A DNA stretch of 63,694 nt, counting the filler, from Hyphochytrium catenoides (Eukaryota; Protista; Hyphochytriomycota), in the NCBI GenBank assembly GCA_900088475.1. It is 12 parts of 12 records of this genome, joined end to end, with 100 filler letters (N's around TTAATTAATTAA, not from the genome) between each part and the next. Parts side by side here need not be neighbours in the genome. Positions count along the whole stretch, not along the records: positions 5,134 to 13,334 come from FLMG01001752.1; positions 13,435 to 17,024 come from FLMG01004597.1; 10 more parts are not named here. One strand, 5' to 3'. The stretch's first letter is position 1, and the number at the start of each line of letters is the position of its first letter. Below the pieces are notes generated by a model, which worked only from the letters and a program-made list of their open reading frames with translations, ran no database searches and was not told the origin of the DNA. The translations under genes were made by a program, and so were the position numbers. Shown here one piece after another: positions 5,134 through 14,089 of the stretch.

Positions 5134-5683
5134 GCGAGGAAGAGTGCTCAAACCCAGATCGCTTTCAAACTCACATAATGCTTATTTCCTTCCATTTTAG
5201 GCTAATGCCTCATAACGTCACCCTAACACAGGTTAATAATTGAAAAAGATATATGAGTTAGCGTTGTTAGAAGGTTTGGCATCGGCCATATTTGTGATGG
5301 GTGTTCTGATCCGAAATGAGAGTGGTCATCTCTTCAAGTTGCCCAGTCATTGCCCCGTTCGGTTCTGACCCATCGAATCATTATTCCGAATAAAGCTACC
5401 ATTCTCATGAAATAAAACTCGAGTGGCCTGTGGGAATTAGAATAACGAGGGTGAGTTACTCCCTCCCCTATGTGTTTGAGTGTTTCCCTCGTGTCAAATG
5501 TTAAGCCGACGGAGCCACTCACCCGCTGGTGAGAGCCTTTCTCGACTCTGTCTTGTTCCTGTTCGTAAGGGCCTTTCCTTTCTCTTTCCTCTATCTTTCT
5601 CCACTCTCTTTCTCTTCCTCTTTCTCTCTCTCTCTGTCTCGCTCTGTTTCTCTTTTCCTCCCTCTCACTTTTCTCTCTTCTCT

Positions 5684-5719
<36 letters not shown>

Positions 5720-6035
5720 CTCTCTGTCTCTTTCACTCTCGGTCTCTCTCGTTATATCTCTACCTCTCTCTCTCTTTTCTTTCTCTCTTTTCTCTCTGTC
5801 TCTCTCCCTCTCTGTCTCACTTGATATATCTCTTTCCCCCTCTGTCTCTCTGTTCTGTGTCGCTGTCTCTCTCGCTCTGTCTCTCTTTTTTCTGTCTCTG
5901 TCCCTTTGTTCTCTGTCTCTCTGTCTCTCTCTCTCTTTTGGCTTGATTGTCTCCTAATCTCGGTGGTCTGTCTTCCTTTATCTCTTGCCTTCTTTTCGCT
6001 GGTTTTTCTCTTTTGTTTTTCTCTATTCACCAAGT

Positions 6036-6090
<55 letters not shown>

Positions 6091-6413
6091 TCGTCTTGTC
6101 TCTTCTCTGATTCTCGCTTTGCAAGCAAGGACACTGAAAAAAAAAAAATCACTATAAAGACAATTTCTCTCTTCCAGATGTGAAGATTATTGCGTCTTCT
6201 ACTGAAAATCTCCGTAATGTTATCCGGAAAGGGAGCTGCAGAATCTCGAGAAGATGGGAAAGAATATCAGAATGAATCAAAAAGATGAAGACTAATGCCT
6301 GGTTCTCTCCAAAGGGGCGCTTTACATTGCCCTTCAAAATGTTCTCCTTTTTCGCCCCGGCGACTTCTCTCTTTCCTGAGCTTGTGCTCTTATAAATCTC
6401 TTTCTTCGACGCA

Positions 6414-6885
6414 ATGAAGGCTGCCGCTGCCCCTATAAAAAGCGTCAGCGCTGGGACAAACATCGCCATCGGAGTCGCTCTCGGTCTTCCGACTCCAAGC
6501 TGTGAGGTCGGAGGAGGAGAGAGACAGAAAGCGCTTGTCTTTCGCAAGCTCTCTCTCCCGCTGAAACTCGCCCCTGAGTCCACATTAAGGCAGATTCTCA
6601 TTGGAAAGAAAGGCGCGAACATCAAAAATCTTTCCGATGAGACGCGATGTCATCTAGCGCTCAGGCAGCCGGAAAAAGCGGCAGATAAGGGAGATGGAGC
6701 TTATCTTCTTATCAGCGGGGAGACCGAGGGAAGGGTGAGAAGAAGCCTCCCTCTCTCCTGGTGTTTGACTCTCTCTCTCTCCTTTCTTCTCTCTCTTGCT
6801 TTCTTTCGTCCCCCTCAGCCCACTATCTTCTATTCCTTCCGTCCCTCCTTCTCTCTCTCTCTCTCCTTTATACTATCTCTTTCTT

Positions 6886-6918
<33 letters not shown>

Positions 6919-7209
6919 CCCACTCTCTGTCTCTCTCTTTCTCTGTCTCTCGCTTTCTCTGTCTCTCGCTTTCTCTGTCTCTCTCTCTCTTTCTCTCTCT
7001 CTGTCTCTCTATACTTGTTTCTCTTCCTCTTCCTCTTTCTCTTTTCTCTACAGATTTCCTCCCTTCTCTCTCCTCTGTCTTTCTCACCTACTCTTTCTCC
7101 CTTTTGCCTGCTTGCGCTTTGTCTTCTTCTTGTTCTTCTTTCTCAATCCTTTTCTGCGGGTGAATGAAGTATGAACCTCATTCCTTTTTACAATGTGACA
7201 CACTCCCTC

Positions 7210-7245
<36 letters not shown>

Positions 7246-10200
7246 TTCTCGCTCTCTCTCTCTTCCTGTCTGCTTCTTCGTAGGTAAACAAAGCGGAGAG
7301 ACTGGTATTGGAGTACATAAACGCCCAACTGACTGAGGGAAAGAGGAGAGAACAGGAAGAGGAGAAGAGAAAGAGACAACAAGAAGAAAGAAGAAAAAAA
7401 AGAGAGGAGGATGAAAGAAGAAAGAAGAGCAATGTTGGAAAAAAACGTCCTCTCCCGCAATCTTCTCCCTCCTTTAGCAAGGAAGGGTCGAAGAAGAAGA
7501 AAGAGGCAAAATCTAATCAAAGGAAACGAGGGAAGGGGAGAGAGAGAGAAAGAGAGAGAAAGGGAGGACCTCCTCCGAAAAAAGAGAGAGGGCCTCCTTT
7601 CCTGAACGCTTCCGTCAGATATACAGCCCGGCGAAGGGAAGAGGATCATGGGAACGAAGAGGGAGAGAAAGAGGGAGCAAGAGAGACTCGGAAGATGATG
7701 GAAGAGAGTGAGAGACCTGATCTTCTCTCTTCATACCCCGAAGACATAGAGGCGGGGAGGTGGAGGGAAAGAGAGCGAGAAAGAGAGTTTGCCGCCTATC
7801 CTCCTCCCTACTCTGCTTCTCCTCTCTCCCAGACGTCTCTCCTTCCCTCCCCGAAGTTTCATCTCTCTTATCCTATCCCTGGGAGCACGCTGGGAGGAAG
7901 GGAGGAAGCCGCGAGAGAGAGAAGAGAGAGAGAAAGAGAGAAAATTTACGCGGATTCAAGGGACTATCTGCCTAGAGACCACCACTCGAGGGAGAAAAGG
8001 CAATGGGACCGGGAGAGAATAAGAGAGACAAGAGAAGAAAGACCTTTATTAGTAGAAGACGCGGAAAGAGAAAAGGAAAGAGAGAGAAGTTATGAAGAAA
8101 GAGAAGAGACTTATCCCTACCCTTCACAGCATAGAACGGATGGTCTAAGAGAGAGAGAGAGAGATGACAAATATTTCTTCACCAGCAGAGAGAGGGATAG
8201 CAACTGGACAGAGAGAGAGACGGACAGAGATGGTTACCCTTCCAGTTCTCTTCCTCCTTCCCGTACGAAGCCTCTTTCTCTCTCCTTTACTTCTTCTCTC
8301 CCTCATGCGTCTTCCTCTCTTCTGCAAGACAGAGATTATTTGCCTCCTCGGGACTGGGAGACCGAGCCTCCTCGCTCGTTTTCTCTTCCCAACAGAGGCT
8401 CCCCAGCACTCTCTTCCGCCGGTCTTTCCCCTAATAGGAAGTGGAGAGAAAGAGAGAGAGAAAAGAGAGAGTCATCCGCCTCTCTCTCTCCTCGACAGAG
8501 AACAAGACAAGCCCGGGAGAGGTTTCGCCACGAGGCAACCAGCGTCTCTCCCTCTTTCCAAAACTTTGTTCCGAGGGTTGAAGAGTCTCTCTCTCTTCCC
8601 CGGCCTCCCGTCTCTATTGCTAGTCAAACCTCTCTCTCTTCTGATGGTTGCACACAGACAGAGACACCATTGATGTTCTCTGAGCGCACGCAGACGGAGA
8701 GAGAGATGCTAACCCGAGAGAGAGAAACACAGACGACTCTCTCTTCTCATCCTATCTCCACACAGACAGAAGCACCACCTCTCTCTCGAGAAAGAGAGGC
8801 GCAGACCGATATATATTATCTATCAACTGCATGCCAGACAGAGTCTGCGCGAGAGGAAGAAAAAGGAGAGAGGGTGCATGTGGCTACCTCTACCTCGGAG
8901 ATAAGAGGAGAGACAGATGAAGAGCGAGGTGAAGAGAAGAGAGAGAAACGAGACATTCTCTCCCAACTTGCAACCTTACTTCTAAAGCAGGGAGAATCGT
9001 ATCGCTCTCTCTCCTTCTCTCTCTCTCGTCCGCGGACACAACTCCAAGTGGGAGAGACAGTGGAAGGCGTCTCTCCGTTCTCTGGAGAAAATGACGGCGT
9101 TGCAGCGCTAAGAGAGCTGGAGAGAGCGATTCTGGAGGAGGAAGAAGCGAGAAAAGTACTAGAAGAGAAAAAGAAGAAAGCACGTGATTGTCTGCAATCT
9201 TCTCTCTCTTTGAAAGGTCTCACTCTCTCTCAGCTTCAGATCCCTAAAGAGCTTTTTTCACCCACAGAGGATGGGACATCGAAGGAGTAAGTTCGTCTTT
9301 TCCCCGTGCCTCTCTCAGTCTCTCTCTCTCTCTCTCGCCTTTGGCTGTTCCCGCCAGTCTCTCTCTTCCCTCTCACTCCGTCTATACCTGTGTCTGGATC
9401 GGTCTCTTTCCAACGGTTTCTCTCTCTTCTCTCTCTCTTTTCTCTCTCTGTTCTCTCACCCTCTCTCTCTCACTCTCTCTCTCTTTTCTCTCACTCTCTC
9501 TCTCTCTCTTTTCTCTTTCTTTCTCTCTCTCTCTTCCACTCTCTTCTCCTCGGACCTCTCTCTACCGACCACTTCCTCTCTCTTCCTTTCTCCTTTCTGT
9601 TGTCCTCCTCCCTCCATGGCACTGGGGATACCCCCCTCTCGTCGAATAATACTGCTAACTCAATTGCATCTCTAGGGAGGACCGTCACATCCTCGGGGAG
9701 TGTCGCAAAGCCGTCCGTCGGATCTGCGACGAGATCGAGAGAGAGATTCGAGCTTCAGCTTGCAAATGCAGAGGCAGAGCAAAAGGGAGAATCGGAAGCT
9801 ACGGCGCCTTGCGATGCAATGTCTGCAAGAGTTGCTGCCAATTGCACTGCTCCTGCGGCAGCAAGTGTAGATGTAGGAATTGCGTCGTGTATAGAGAGAC
9901 AGCGAGGAGACTGGAAGAAGAAGAAGAGATGCTGAGGCAAATGGACAATCAGAGAGAAGAGGAAAATCGGTAAGAAGAAGCTTCTCTTCTTCAGCAGACA
10001 CTTTCTCTGTTTCTGTCGGTCTGCGTCTCTCTTTCTCCCTTCACTAAGAGCTCATTCTCTTGCGTTGCACTTTGCTTCTTCTCTTCTGATCTTCCGCTTA
10101 TGGACCTTCGTTTTGCTAGCCTTCTGCTGGCCCTTTGTCTTCGCATATGCTCTGTCCTGTTTCCTGGCCTACTCTCTGTACTTTAACTTTCCCTCCTCTA

Positions 10201-11159
10201 TGATCGTATTATCCTCTCTCTTTTTCCTACTTCTCTCTCTGTGTGTTTTGCTCTCGCTGTTGGTTTTCTTTCTCCTCCTCGCGCTGTGTCGTGACTTCTT
10301 TATCTCTTTTTTCCATTGCATGGTTCTCTCTCTCTATCTTTCTCTCTCTCTCTCTCTCTCCCCCTCGCATAACCGTTTTGTGTCTCCGACTCGACGTCTT
10401 TTATCGTTCTCCAGGAAAGAGCAGGAACGGCTTTTCAAAGCCGCGAAGAGCCGCATGGCAAGAGCCCATGGTCCTTTTAGAATAAACATCAAGCTTAGGG
10501 ATGAACGGGAAGATGGTGAGTCCCAGAGGAGAAGGGCAGGAAAGAGACATTAGCTAGAAAAAGAGAGAGGGATGGTCTACTATATGACCTTCGTTGCCTC
10601 TACTACTGATGCCCTTTTGCTCTCTCCCTCTCTCTCCCTCCTCTCTCTCCGGCATAACCCCATCTCTCGCTCTCTGTTCCCCCTCCCGCACTCTCTCTCT
10701 CTGTCTCTCTCTCTCTTTTTTTCTCTCTCTCTCTGTCTGTCTCTCTCTCTCCCTCCCTCTCTCTCCCTCTCCCTCTCTCTCTCTCCCTCTCTCTCTCTCT
10801 CTTTCTTTCCCTGTACACGTCTCATTCTTTGCCTGTTCTTGCCTATTTCTCTCTTTCTCTCTGTCATCCCTATTCACCCTGCCCTTCTAACCCTTCCCAC
10901 TTTCTCTCTCTCTCTGCCGCTATCGCCGTCCATCCAAGGCTCTCCCCCTATGGTGCTGGACAAGTCTCCTCCTTTGGACCCCTACGCCGTGCTTGGCCTT
11001 CCCCGCTCCGCGTCTCTGAAGGAAGTCAAGCAAAAGTACAGGACTTTAGCCTTGCAGCTACATCCTGACAAGAGAGGAGGAAGGGAAGACGAAGGAGAAG
11101 ACACGGTCAATCGATTTGTTCTGGTCACGCGGGCCTATGAGTTGCTGACCAAAAGCTAG
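6414..11159 (+). CDS. Multi-exon protein (~979 aa): N-terminal KH domain, long Arg/Glu-rich disordered region with a TQT motif array, Cys-rich domain, C-terminal DnaJ (J) domain
   Basis: Manual model: exons 6414-6734, 7284-9286, 9676-9969, 10415-10515, 10939-11159 (2940 nt). All introns are GT-AG with matching phases 0,2,2,1. KH signature ILIGKKGANIKNL..LLISG..V.KAE.LV is completed across intron 1. J domain DPYAVLGL..EVKQKYRTLALQLHPDK..F..VTRAYELL. The KH and J calls are firm. Joining them into one gene is inferred; it could instead stop at TAA 9290. Confidence 0.7.
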
Positions 11160-11580
11160 GCCTCACAGTCTCTCTCAAATCTTTTTGTCTCTGCCCCAGG
11201 CGTCAGGAGTCACCCGGCTGTCCCTGTGTATTTCTATTATTTGTTGTCTCTCTATGTGTCCCCTATTATTTATGGTCTGCTAGGGCTATCGACGGAACTT
11301 TGAACCTTTTAGGCGTCGAAGTTGTATACACGCGAAAGAGAGAGAGAGAGGAGAGAATGGAAAGGTCTAACGATCTAGCTTGACACAGACTTTGTATAAA
11401 GAAGAGCTCTCTTATTCATTAGACAAACCCCAGTGATTGCCAGAGGGTTAAAAGGCCAACAAAAGATACGTGGCTCACTCCATCTTCTCCCTCTCTTCTC
11501 TACAAATACAAGAGAGAGAGAGAGAGAAAGAGTCATTCTTCCGTTTTGCCTCTTCGCCCTTCTACTGGGTAGGAAGCTCC

Positions 11581-13098
11581 TCAGCCGCAAAGGATGAAGT
11601 TGGCGGTAGCGCAGGAGGAGCTCTCCGTAGGCTCCGCCATGGCTCTGGAAGTTCGAGAGTAGCGAAGATTATCCACCGACAGCATCCGGCGCGCAAGCAG
11701 CTCTTCTCCTTTCTCTCCGTCTCTCTCTGCCTCTCCACTCACCACAAGTGTGAAACGCTGAGGTCTGAAGGTCCGAAGCGCCTTCTCTAGCGTTTGAACT
11801 GGAAGAAGAGAGAGATCATTGGTCTCTAAAGAGGCGTAGCTGCACTCTTTCTCAGGAGTAATGTGCATTGTATAGTACGCATCTCCTGCAAGACCGTTCA
11901 TAGAGTAACCACAAGGATCAAAGGCCACGGCGTCAATGGTGGCGCCGTTGCAAAGCTCATCGATGCCGCCTTTCTTGGTCATTTCTATGGGATTGTCCGT
12001 GTTTTTCTTGAAGAAGATTGACGCTGTCTCCTCCGCAAGACCGAACATCATGAGGTTGAAGGTAGAGCGCGATGGTTTAGCCTTAAGAGACGCGGGGGAG
12101 AGAGAGCCTTGAGGAGAGAGAAGAGGCCTGTGAACCACGTACATCAGCCAGTGATCGCCTGCCATTGGACCCAAGATGTGTCCACTTCCATCTCTAAACC
12201 ACTCGTCCAAGAACTTTGTCTCGGTAGTGAAAGAAGTATGAGGAAACTCTTGCTGCTCGGGGAAGGAGAAGTTCTTCCTCGAGTAGAGAAGGCCCTCCAG
12301 TTCCAGGCCCTGCTCTCGGGAATACTCCATAATGACAGGAATAGCGCGGAGAAGAGTGGTGGTGCCGCAAGTCTAAAGAGAGAGAGAGAGAGAAAGAGAA
12401 AGACTCTTAGAGATGCCAAGGCCCGAGTAGTGTGTCAGTTAGACCTAAATGCGGGAGAGGAAGAGCGTATAGAAGAGAAAAAGGGATAGAGACAAGAGAG
12501 TTTGAAGGACAGAAGAGGAGGAAAAGAGAGAGAGACAGGGAAAGAGCGATCTCTTTCTGTCTTACCTTCAAGATAATCTTGTTCTCATAGACGAAGAGAG
12601 AAGACTCGGAGAGGATGTAAGAGTCAAAGGACTCTGTAGACATCTTCGTCATGATCAGACAGCGCGCCTTCTCACAGATGTGATCCAGCTGAGCGCGGCT
12701 AAAGGAGCGAAGGCCTCCATTGGCCAAGCCGCGGCCTCTGAAGGTCATCTCCAGATTCTTTTCTGGGCCTTCAAAGAGCTGCAAACAATAGAGAAAGAAG
12801 AGAAGCCCAAGATCAGTCTCTAGAGGAAAGACGAACAAGAAAACGGTGATAGCACAGACAGATATTTCTCCTCAAAAGTGAGTGATTTCTGAAGCTTTTT
12901 ATCGGGAAAACTCTTTTGAATAATGAATTATCTTCAGCGACTTACCATGACCTCCGGTAGAGCTCCGTCATTGGAAGAGAGACCGCCAGCCGCGGGTGGA
13001 GCGTGAACTCCTGCGCCGGTCAGCTCAAGCTGAGAGAGAGCGGAAGTGACGTCCTGGCTCTCAGGAGAGAAAGAGACGGGTGCTTCTTCTGAAGGCAT
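11581..13098 (-). CDS. AMD1: S-adenosylmethionine decarboxylase proenzyme (~385 aa, 3 exons)
   Basis: Exons 13098-12946, 12778-12566, 12372-11581 with GTAAG donors. Motifs FEGPEK, YILSESSLFVY (pyruvoyl self-cleavage E/S), KTCGTT (rebuilt across intron 2), FDPCGYSMN and TMHITPE..CSYASLETN. Confidence 0.95.
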
Positions 13099-13180
13099 GA
13101 TTGGTCTTCAATGAAGATCAAAGAAGAGAGGGAGAAAGGGTTTGGACGTTATGAGAGACCGCCGACTCTTTAGCTGAATG

Positions 13181-13291
13181 TTAGCCTGGCTTCTTGCACC
13201 CGATGAACGGGTAGAGCGCGTCCTTCAGGGTGCTTTGGACGTCCCGGAGATCCGACACGAGCTGCTCGCAGAGATTTTTCTCAATTATCAT
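13181..13291 (-). promoter_or_regulatory. Upstream ORF in the AdoMetDC 5' leader: MIIEKNLCEQLVSDLRDVQSTLKDALYPFIGCKKPG*
   Basis: ATG at 13291, TAA at 13183-13181 (36 aa). It ends 82 nt before the main ATG with no intervening ATG. The C-terminus resembles the plant AdoMetDC small uORF ending (C-x-K/R-K/R-P-S-stop). Confidence 0.75.
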
Positions 13292-14089
13292 ACGGACCAA
13301 AAGCTCCGATATACTTTACGCCGCCTTCAGAACCNNNNNNNNNNNNNNNNNNNNNNNNNNNNNNNNNNNNNNNNNNNNTTAATTAATTAANNNNNNNNNN
13401 NNNNNNNNNNNNNNNNNNNNNNNNNNNNNNNNNNGAGAGAGAGAGAGAGAGAGAGAGAGAGAACAAGAAGAAAGGAAGAAAGAGGCAAAGAGAGCAAGGG
13501 AGGGAGAGAGTGACAAGAAAGACCGACAGAAGAAGGGAAGAAGGGAAAGAAGAGAAGGAGAAAAGAAATGGAGAAAAGAGAGAAAAGAGAGAGAGAGCAG
13601 AACAAAACAGTAAACGACTGCGGTGGCGTGGATCAGTGATGAGTGGTTGCAGGCACTGTGAGGAGAGATAGGAGAGACACAGTGGGAGGAAAGAGGAGAA
13701 GCTCCGGTCGGAATGCAGTCATAGCCACGTCGTTGCACTCTCTCTCTCTCTCTCCCCCTCTCCTCAGTCTCTTCTTCCTTTTTTGTCCAAGAAAGAAACT
13801 GGCCCTAGGAGAAGAAACTGCATCTCCTGCTGCATTTCCCTCTTCAGCATTGGCCATTCGCCACCCTCCCGCCCGACGTGAAAAGTCTTCTTGCCAACAT
13901 GTCGGCAACCTCTCTCTCTCTCTCTCTTTTTCTCTCTCTCTTGTTCTCTCTTTATCGTTTCAATCTCGTTGTCATAAGATGAAAAGTTACTCGTCGCAAC
14001 GCTTCAGCCTGACATTGGAACTAACACGAATAATTGTACTTCCCTCTTATTCTACTGTCCCTCCTCTCTCCGATCCTCTCTCTCTCTTT

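Follow-up and report, generated by a model that had tools for sequence, protein, structure and literature searches.

Does the short open reading frame (ORF) that precedes the gene for S-adenosylmethionine decarboxylase (AdoMetDC) in Hyphochytrium catenoides control the translation of the enzyme, or is it a chance feature of the leader? The gene lies on the minus strand at the end of one piece (FLMG01001752.1, positions 5,134 to 13,334) of the window, i.e. the whole stretch of 63,694 nucleotides that was analysed, made up of 12 joined parts of the assembly GCA_900088475.1; all positions count along this stretch. AdoMetDC catalyses the committed step towards spermidine and spermine, and its translational feedback through peptides encoded in upstream ORFs (uORFs) is a classic example of a small molecule being sensed by the ribosome. 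The original prediction, made from the DNA sequence alone, had described the ORF as a lineage-specific, ribosome-stalling sensor of polyamines. In our assessment the 36-codon ORF is, with a probability of about 0.7, a uORF that is translated and regulates the AdoMetDC mRNA in cis, and a divergent member of a conserved-peptide family located upstream of AdoMetDC of the stramenopile type. It most likely represents a further divergent member of a control device already known, and not a novel one: the Pro-Gly ending and the lineage are new here, the principle is not.

The AdoMetDC leader and its upstream ORF

Direct reading of the minus strand confirmed the predicted frame, a 36-codon uORF that ends in Cys-Lys-Lys-Pro-Gly-stop 82 nt before the start codon of the enzyme. 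Its ATG is the only one among the 236 visible leader bases on that strand, so that the uORF is indeed the only ATG-initiated ORF of the visible leader. The identification of the downstream gene as AdoMetDC also holds: the gene has three exons, and exons 2 and 3 match Pfam PF01536, covering together positions 4-331 of the 343 positions of the profile. The features of the leader and of the gene are as follows.

13334-13292, minus strand: visible leader upstream of the uORF, without ATG, with an in-frame TAA at 13318-13316, ending at an assembly gap
13291-13181, minus strand: uORF, 36 sense codons and TAA, peptide end C-K-K-P-G-stop, read directly
13291-13289, minus strand: uORF start codon ATG in the weak context gtccgtATGA (C at -3, A at +4)
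13183-13179, minus strand: uORF stop codon TAA followed by CA (TAA CAT), read directly
13180-13099, minus strand: spacer from uORF stop to main ATG, 82 nt, CT-rich, read directly
13178-13334, plus strand: antisense ORF with ATG at 13178, open for 52 codons to the edge of the piece, overlapping the region of three-base periodicity
13098-12946, minus strand: AdoMetDC exon 1, 51 codons of N-terminal extension, stopping before a GT donor; ORF and donor read directly
12778-12566, minus strand: AdoMetDC exon 2, PF01536 at 2.6e-22, profile positions 4-76
12372-11581, minus strand: AdoMetDC exon 3 including the stop codon, PF01536 at 7e-62 (12372-11584), profile positions 77-331

The main start codon at 13098 stands in the context ccaatcATGC, with A at -3. 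A tiny uORF of the plant type is not seen in the visible leader: there is no ATG in 13292-13334, the leader ending at the gap at 13334, and the triplet whose last base is the A of the uORF ATG reads GTA, which is not a stop codon, so that there is no one-base overlap with the stop of a tiny uORF. In the non-coding DNA of the piece (TC)n arrays predominate; none of them lies within 13128-13334, and the region is free of microsatellite as originally described; the sole repeat near the leader is a weak one (10 nt, two copies) at 13108-13127, inside the CT-rich spacer.

The existence of such an ORF is by itself no evidence of function. Closed ATG-initiated ORFs of at least 36 codons occur in 17.6% of shuffled leaders, so the bare existence of a 36-codon leader ORF is within chance expectation; one ATG or fewer is found in 12.8% of the shuffled leaders. 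The composition of the frame is more telling. GC content at the three codon positions is 0.57/0.31/0.80 in the uORF, compared to 0.54/0.46/0.60 in the AdoMetDC coding sequence (CDS), and three-base periodicity is marked (chi2 16.8, p 2e-4), at a level not attained by any of 636 non-coding windows (introns and 3' flank) and reached in 2% of CDS windows and in 0.5% of the windows of the whole piece. When codon usage was scored with the coding sequence of the piece as training set, the uORF frame obtained +6.4 bits, the antisense frame +1.8 bits and the four remaining frames -8.7 to -14.9 bits. Given this periodicity and these scores, the block resembles coding DNA, with the uORF frame a better candidate than the antisense frame.

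The enzyme itself places H. catenoides at some distance from other sequenced organisms. AdoMetDC was searched one exon at a time and the tree was built from exon 3 only, the joined CDS being used only for composition and codon statistics. Exon 3 has 1575 homologues, of which the top match shows 51% identity, with oomycetes and brown algae coming next (40-45%). With no AdoMetDC relative above 51% identity, H. catenoides is without close sequenced kin in protein collections. In the exon-3 tree the branch of its AdoMetDC is very long, at 2.94 changes per column, and falls within a clade, with 91% support, that also includes oomycetes, brown algae and several protist transcripts.

Upstream ORFs in the leaders of AdoMetDC relatives

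The DNA around twelve AdoMetDC relatives was examined and the ORFs of their leaders were listed. Eight leaders carry uORFs of 24-41 codons, located 11-198 nt before the main ATG, that end in Pro-x-stop or Asp-Ile-Ser-stop (D-I-S-stop); they come from Phytophthora sojae, two oomycete-type transcripts, a transcript of the MMETSP collection and four protist contigs or transcripts. The uORF of H. catenoides lies within this range both in its length (36 codons) and in its distance to the main ATG (82 nt), and features a penultimate proline and, as in the oomycete uORFs, a cysteine five residues before the stop. The dinucleotide CA follows the stop codon in the uORFs of all eight relatives and in that of H. 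catenoides (9/9).

A blind scan of the piece and of 13 loci, both strands included, covered 230 ATG-initiated ORFs of 24-45 aa with a signature composed of a Pro-x or D-I-S ending and of CA after the stop codon. It returned nine ORFs, namely the H. catenoides uORF, seven ATG-initiated leader uORFs of the relatives and a second leader ORF of Ectocarpus, and none of the 221 others. Among these others, a Pro-x or D-I-S ending is found in 10 (4.5%) and CA after the stop codon in 7.2%. The joint presence of the penultimate proline and of CA after the stop is beyond chance.

Order-dependent similarity of the peptide was also apparent in global alignments compared to composition-preserving shuffles, with p 0.0035 against the MMETSP uORF (L011) and p 0.002 against that of P. 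sojae. At three gap settings, the summed global score gave p 0.002-0.005 when all eight members were included and 1e-4 to 6e-4 for the four of Pro type; by the same summed score, the peptide outscored 115 of 115 natural decoy ORFs of 30-42 aa. Compared to the oomycete and ochrophyte uORFs (L009, L006, L016, L011), it is alike in its length (34-36 aa in this group), its penultimate proline, the CA after its stop codon, a cysteine four to five residues before the stop and an aromatic-I-G motif preceding this cysteine; unlike them, it is without a strong V-D-D-I-I/V-D core and has K-K in place of their D-E or D. Membership of the H. catenoides uORF in the family is likely, although not proven by sequence, and the architecture and termination context held in common are stronger arguments for it than the peptide sequence. 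Related uORFs thus precede AdoMetDC in oomycetes, in a brown alga and in several protist transcripts, and the H. catenoides peptide is colinearly similar to them with the same context of CA after the stop; the lineage specificity that had been proposed for the uORF is not supported.

Among the Pro-type uORFs, those of P. sojae (L009, 1760-1864) and of the two oomycete-type transcripts (L006, 393-503, and L016, 512-616) encode 34-36 aa and end in A-C-D-E-P-A-stop. The oomycete uORF is strongly conserved, with the longer end F-T-G-F-F-Y-I-G-A-C-D-E-P-A-stop, and lies 40-198 nt before the main ATG. The Pro-type uORF of the MMETSP transcript (L011, 157-264) encodes 35 aa, ends in D-C-D-P-S-stop and is located 11 nt before the main ATG. 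In Ectocarpus (L010), a leader uORF at 2022-2126 starts with the same core, E-L-E-V-D-D-I-I, and then runs into a GTGAGC donor at 2115, and seems to be split by an intron of the 5' untranslated region (5'UTR). The second Ectocarpus leader ORF (2328-2414) lies 70 nt before the main ATG and ends in A-L-L-C-P-F-G-C-Q-P-L-E-P-S-stop followed by CA; this end resembles that of the H. catenoides uORF, A-L-Y-P-F-I-G-C-K-K-P-G.

The D-I-S-type uORFs (24-41 aa, S-D-I-S-stop) were found in four AdoMetDC lineages of uncultured or marine protists, grouped as L001/L002, L004/L005, L007/L008 and L015, the last of which is truncated at its 5' end and has no visible ATG. Their positions are as follows.

L001, 57-152: D-I-S-type uORF
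L002, 41-136: D-I-S-type uORF
L004, 1871-1975: D-I-S-type uORF
L007, 58-132: D-I-S-type uORF
L008, 53-127: D-I-S-type uORF
L015, 1-126: D-I-S-type uORF

The terminal sequence GAC ATT TCC TGA CA is identical in three divergent lineages of this type, and L015 differs from it at one synonymous base (TCT). Shuffle tests connect the members with one another: L011 with the oomycetes (p <= 0.001) and with Ectocarpus (p <= 0.0005), L004 with L001 (p <= 0.001) and L001 with L007 (p 0.0025); the pair L011 and L001 (p 0.005) links the Pro type to the D-I-S type. An exhaustive profile search with the family alignment (A2), from which the H. catenoides peptide was excluded, added two further members only, P0121 and P0123, both of oomycete type, which indicates that gene callers rarely report these uORF peptides. 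No clear family uORF was seen in the genomic DNA upstream of P0050, P0062 and P0046, where leader introns or compact genomes may hide them. A literature search returned no paper on oomycete AdoMetDC uORFs or on long protist D-I-S uORFs, the supplementary alignments of PMC2811004 lying outside the comparison, so that part of this family may already be known.

It is tempting to speculate that the uORFs of oomycetes, brown alga, uncultured and marine protists and H. catenoides share one homologous scaffold, with an acidic-hydrophobic core, a hydrophobic-Gly-Cys segment, an end that switches between Pro-x-stop and D-I-S-stop, and CA always after the stop codon; we advance this only tentatively. 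If it were true, the two classic polyamine-sensing termination motifs would be interchangeable ends of one ancient sensor and not separate inventions, and the Pro-Gly-stop uORF of H. catenoides would be a divergent member of it. The presence of Pro-x-stop and D-I-S-stop on related peptides bears directly on the question whether the animal and plant sensors have separate origins. In this respect the set of uORFs compared here carries more weight than the single locus, as it suggests a common stop-CA context. The H. catenoides uORF would extend the reach of the device to a deep-branching lineage, in which the enzyme is no more than about 50% identical to any database sequence, and add a Pro-Gly-stop variant.

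RNA contigs, conservation and alternative explanations

Six RNA runs (X1 to X6) were compared in the form of contigs, not reads, the best share of sampled words in any run being 0.09. Run X6 yielded a spliced contig that joins exon 1 to exon 2 (junction 12946|12778, spanning the GT..AG intron 1 of 167 nt) and a second contig over 13076-13228. Both are 151 nt long with a depth of 6.9, on opposite strands, and so probably represent the two mates of a single cDNA fragment. In that case, the spliced AdoMetDC mRNA carries the last 16 codons of the uORF, the spacer and the start of the CDS. The evidence for the uORF as part of the mRNA extends to 13076-13228, on a cDNA-like contig from a run that also contains the spliced junction, whereas the start codon at 13291 is found only on a contig of X1.

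The X6 contig, which is unbroken from the 3' part of the ORF into the AdoMetDC CDS, also bears on the idea that the ORF has no part in the control of AdoMetDC and constitutes either a micropeptide gene of its own or the terminal exon of an upstream gene hidden in the assembly gap. The coding-like signal, candidate AG acceptors upstream of the ATG and the missing sequence past 13334 would all be compatible with this, but an in-frame TAA stands just upstream at 13318-13316, just 82 nt separate the ORF stop from the AdoMetDC ATG, and the features of the ORF match those of AdoMetDC uORFs. Homologues of such a gene were not found either: a word search with the 44-aa stop-to-stop frame of the uORF gave no candidate, and none of six guessed products was present in exact look-ups on either strand. 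We regard this explanation as very unlikely. Pfam and PDB searches with the uORF peptide, and likewise with the antisense ORF, gave no match. A degenerate DNA pattern of the last ten residues of the uORF had a single match, in the JGI metagenomes (L003), which was rejected as chance, being on a bacterial-looking contig without AdoMetDC gene in which the matched frame runs on without a stop. Neither prokaryote genomes nor viral contigs contain an exact match to a 39-mer of the uORF, and bacterial or viral contamination was therefore rejected.

Outside X6, coverage of the locus is confined to a short block. X2 and X3, soil metatranscriptomes from different studies, each contain an identical contig of 184 nt (13095-13278), and X4 and X5 have the same share of words as these two and thus probably contain the same block; the contig of X1 extends over 13099-13294. 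Such an island may reflect a conserved stretch between polymorphic flanks that break low-coverage assembly graphs, or else a separate abundant RNA. The latter would fit an origin of the block on the plus strand, either as the first coding exon of a divergent gene starting at ATG 13178 or as a small RNA of about 184-200 nt, with the uORF as its open antisense frame. Contigs restricted to 13095/13099-13278/13294, ends of the X2 and X3 contigs that are identical across studies, a T5 run on the plus strand at 13275-13279, where these contigs end, and 52 open codons from 13178 to past 13334 over the periodic region are all in keeping with such an origin. However, codon usage scores only +1.8 bits for this frame as against +6.4 for the minus frame, and GC at first codon positions is about 0.8 over the common block (0.71 for the whole plus-strand ORF), which is atypical of coding DNA. 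The predicted plus-strand fold is no better than that of shuffled sequences (z -0.71), and neither Pfam nor PDB offers a match. A known small RNA was rejected, as comparison of both strands of 12900-13334 with Rfam (E up to 10) returned no family and only one chance match of 11 bits. Moreover, the X6 contig extends from the AdoMetDC CDS (13076) into the block, and the Pro-x-stop ending, the CA after the stop, the length and the colinear similarity of the minus frame would be left unexplained. An origin on the plus strand thus appears improbable.

The distribution of sequence differences among the contigs is consistent with constraint on the uORF. Within 13095-13294, all differences of X1, X2, X3 and X6 that could be placed belong to the spacer (13113, 13114, a 2-nt deletion at 13130, 13131 and 13172), and the uORF has none in the contigs of X1, X2 and X3. 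The X6 contig over 13076-13228 has five differences, two of which are unplaced and possibly within its uORF part, and 5 of 66 bases differ in exon 1 of X6. By a hand estimate, the chance that four to five independent events over 196 bases all hit the 82-nt spacer is about 0.01-0.03. This gives modest evidence that the uORF is more constrained than its flanks.

Several points weigh against the preferred reading as a translated member of the uORF family. The antisense ORF on the plus strand overlaps the same periodic region. Local Smith-Waterman scores of the peptide to each relative are not significant (p 0.1-0.9), and a HMMER profile of the family scores it like shuffled peptides (p 0.41-0.55). 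The uORF starts with ATGA, compared to ATGC in all relatives, and its acidic core, V-S-D-L-R-D, is weak. Only the X1 contig (13099-13294) reaches the uORF AUG at 13291, and the RNA status of X1 is a guess. X1 and the four soil metatranscriptomes cover only about 13095-13294, for which an ordinary mRNA leader offers no obvious explanation. Finally, the organisms compared are close, so that the lack of changes over 111 nt carries only modest weight.

Some of these points would also be expected if the ORF were fortuitous and its leader conserved on other grounds, for example as a promoter or 5'UTR element or through an RNA structure; any repression would then be a generic upstream-AUG effect, independent of the sequence. 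The absence of significant local and profile similarity to the family and the occurrence of ORFs of similar size in 18% of shuffled leaders would be accounted for in this way. So would the predicted fold of the minus-strand leader, which is marginally better than that of shuffled sequences (z -2.0), together with the pairing of the two AUG regions in a predicted 7-bp helix. Strong codon periodicity, found in none of the 636 non-coding windows, would be unexpected for such an ORF, as would both signature features of the family, found in none of the 221 other ORFs, and colinear similarity that depends on residue order. The TC-to-CT swap at 13113-13114 in X1 and X6 is not compensatory for the predicted hairpin. 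We consider a fortuitous ORF rather unlikely.

The predicted helix pairs the uORF start region GUAUGAU (13287-13293) with the main start region AUCAUGC (13095-13101). It would close the whole block of uORF and spacer, and its ends nearly match those of the X1 contig.

Predicted control of AdoMetDC and known polyamine-sensing uORFs

For the preferred reading, i.e. a regulatory uORF of the AdoMetDC mRNA, the following mode of action can be proposed. Scanning ribosomes would first meet the uORF AUG, in its weak context with C at -3, where some would initiate and the rest would continue to the main AUG with its A at -3; leaky scanning past the uORF AUG would be expected from general Kozak rules. 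Termination would be slow on the nascent peptide ending in F-I-G-C-K-K-P-G, at a stop codon in the poor context UAA-C-A. Because a C after the stop codon makes a poor termination context in eukaryotes, the CA following the stop may be part of the stall signal. At high spermidine or spermine, release would become still slower through an eIF5A-dependent pause at Pro-x-stop, of the kind known from yeast HOL1 and from AdoMetDC in plants. A ribosome held up there, 82 nt short of the main AUG, would then block and queue scanning subunits, causing AdoMetDC synthesis to drop, whereas at low polyamine levels termination would be fast and the main ORF would be translated. By analogy with known systems, we infer translation of the uORF, stalling and dependence on polyamines.

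The literature on which the original prediction had drawn, i.e. polyamine-linked AdoMetDC uORFs and the PS-stop motif of HOL1, is borne out by PMC2811004 and PMC11550727. AdoMetDC uORFs are present in many lineages, with a penultimate proline everywhere but in vertebrates and the sea squirt (PMC2811004). The penultimate-Pro class includes plants, green and red algae, diatoms, Pezizomycotina and invertebrates (Ivanov, Atkins & Michael 2010, PMC2811004), and its peptides are conserved within lineages (PMC2811004). The H. catenoides uORF resembles this class in its position in the AdoMetDC leader, its second-last proline and its short distance to the main AUG. In plants, where the uORF system represses AdoMetDC translation at high polyamines, the small uORF has 48-55 codons and ends in Pro-Ser-stop (PMC2811004), compared to 36 codons and Pro-Gly-stop in H. 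catenoides; unlike the plant dual system, the visible leader has no overlapping tiny uORF.

The effect of both the mammalian and the plant AdoMetDC uORFs depends on the sequence of the peptide, and the mammalian one causes a polyamine-dependent ribosome stall at termination (PMC2811004). The vertebrate AMD1 uORF encoding MAGDIS belongs to the same gene, and its logic is a peptide-dependent termination pause that blocks scanning ribosomes (PMC2811004). MAGDIS differs in having six codons, a location 14 nt from the cap, no proline and a D-I-S end, in contrast to the 36 codons and the Pro-Gly end of the uORF described here. The D-I-S-stop ending of MAGDIS is absent from the latter but present in the longer uORFs of four protist relatives. 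In yeast, the HOL1 uORF carries a PS-stop motif at which termination is impaired at high polyamines, leading to a queue of ribosomes; HOL1 and the AZIN1/ODC uCC both show a polyamine-sensitive pause at a Pro-containing C-terminal motif, with queuing behind (PMC11550727). These are different genes with unrelated peptides, and a role of eIF5A at the H. catenoides uORF would be pure inference.

Elsewhere on the piece, an exon with a J domain was seen on the plus strand at 10947-11159, converging on the 3' end of AdoMetDC. A KH-domain-like ORF lies at 6414-6760 (plus strand), and a low-complexity ORF of 660 codons, rich in Glu, Arg and Ser, extends over 7308-9290 on the same strand.

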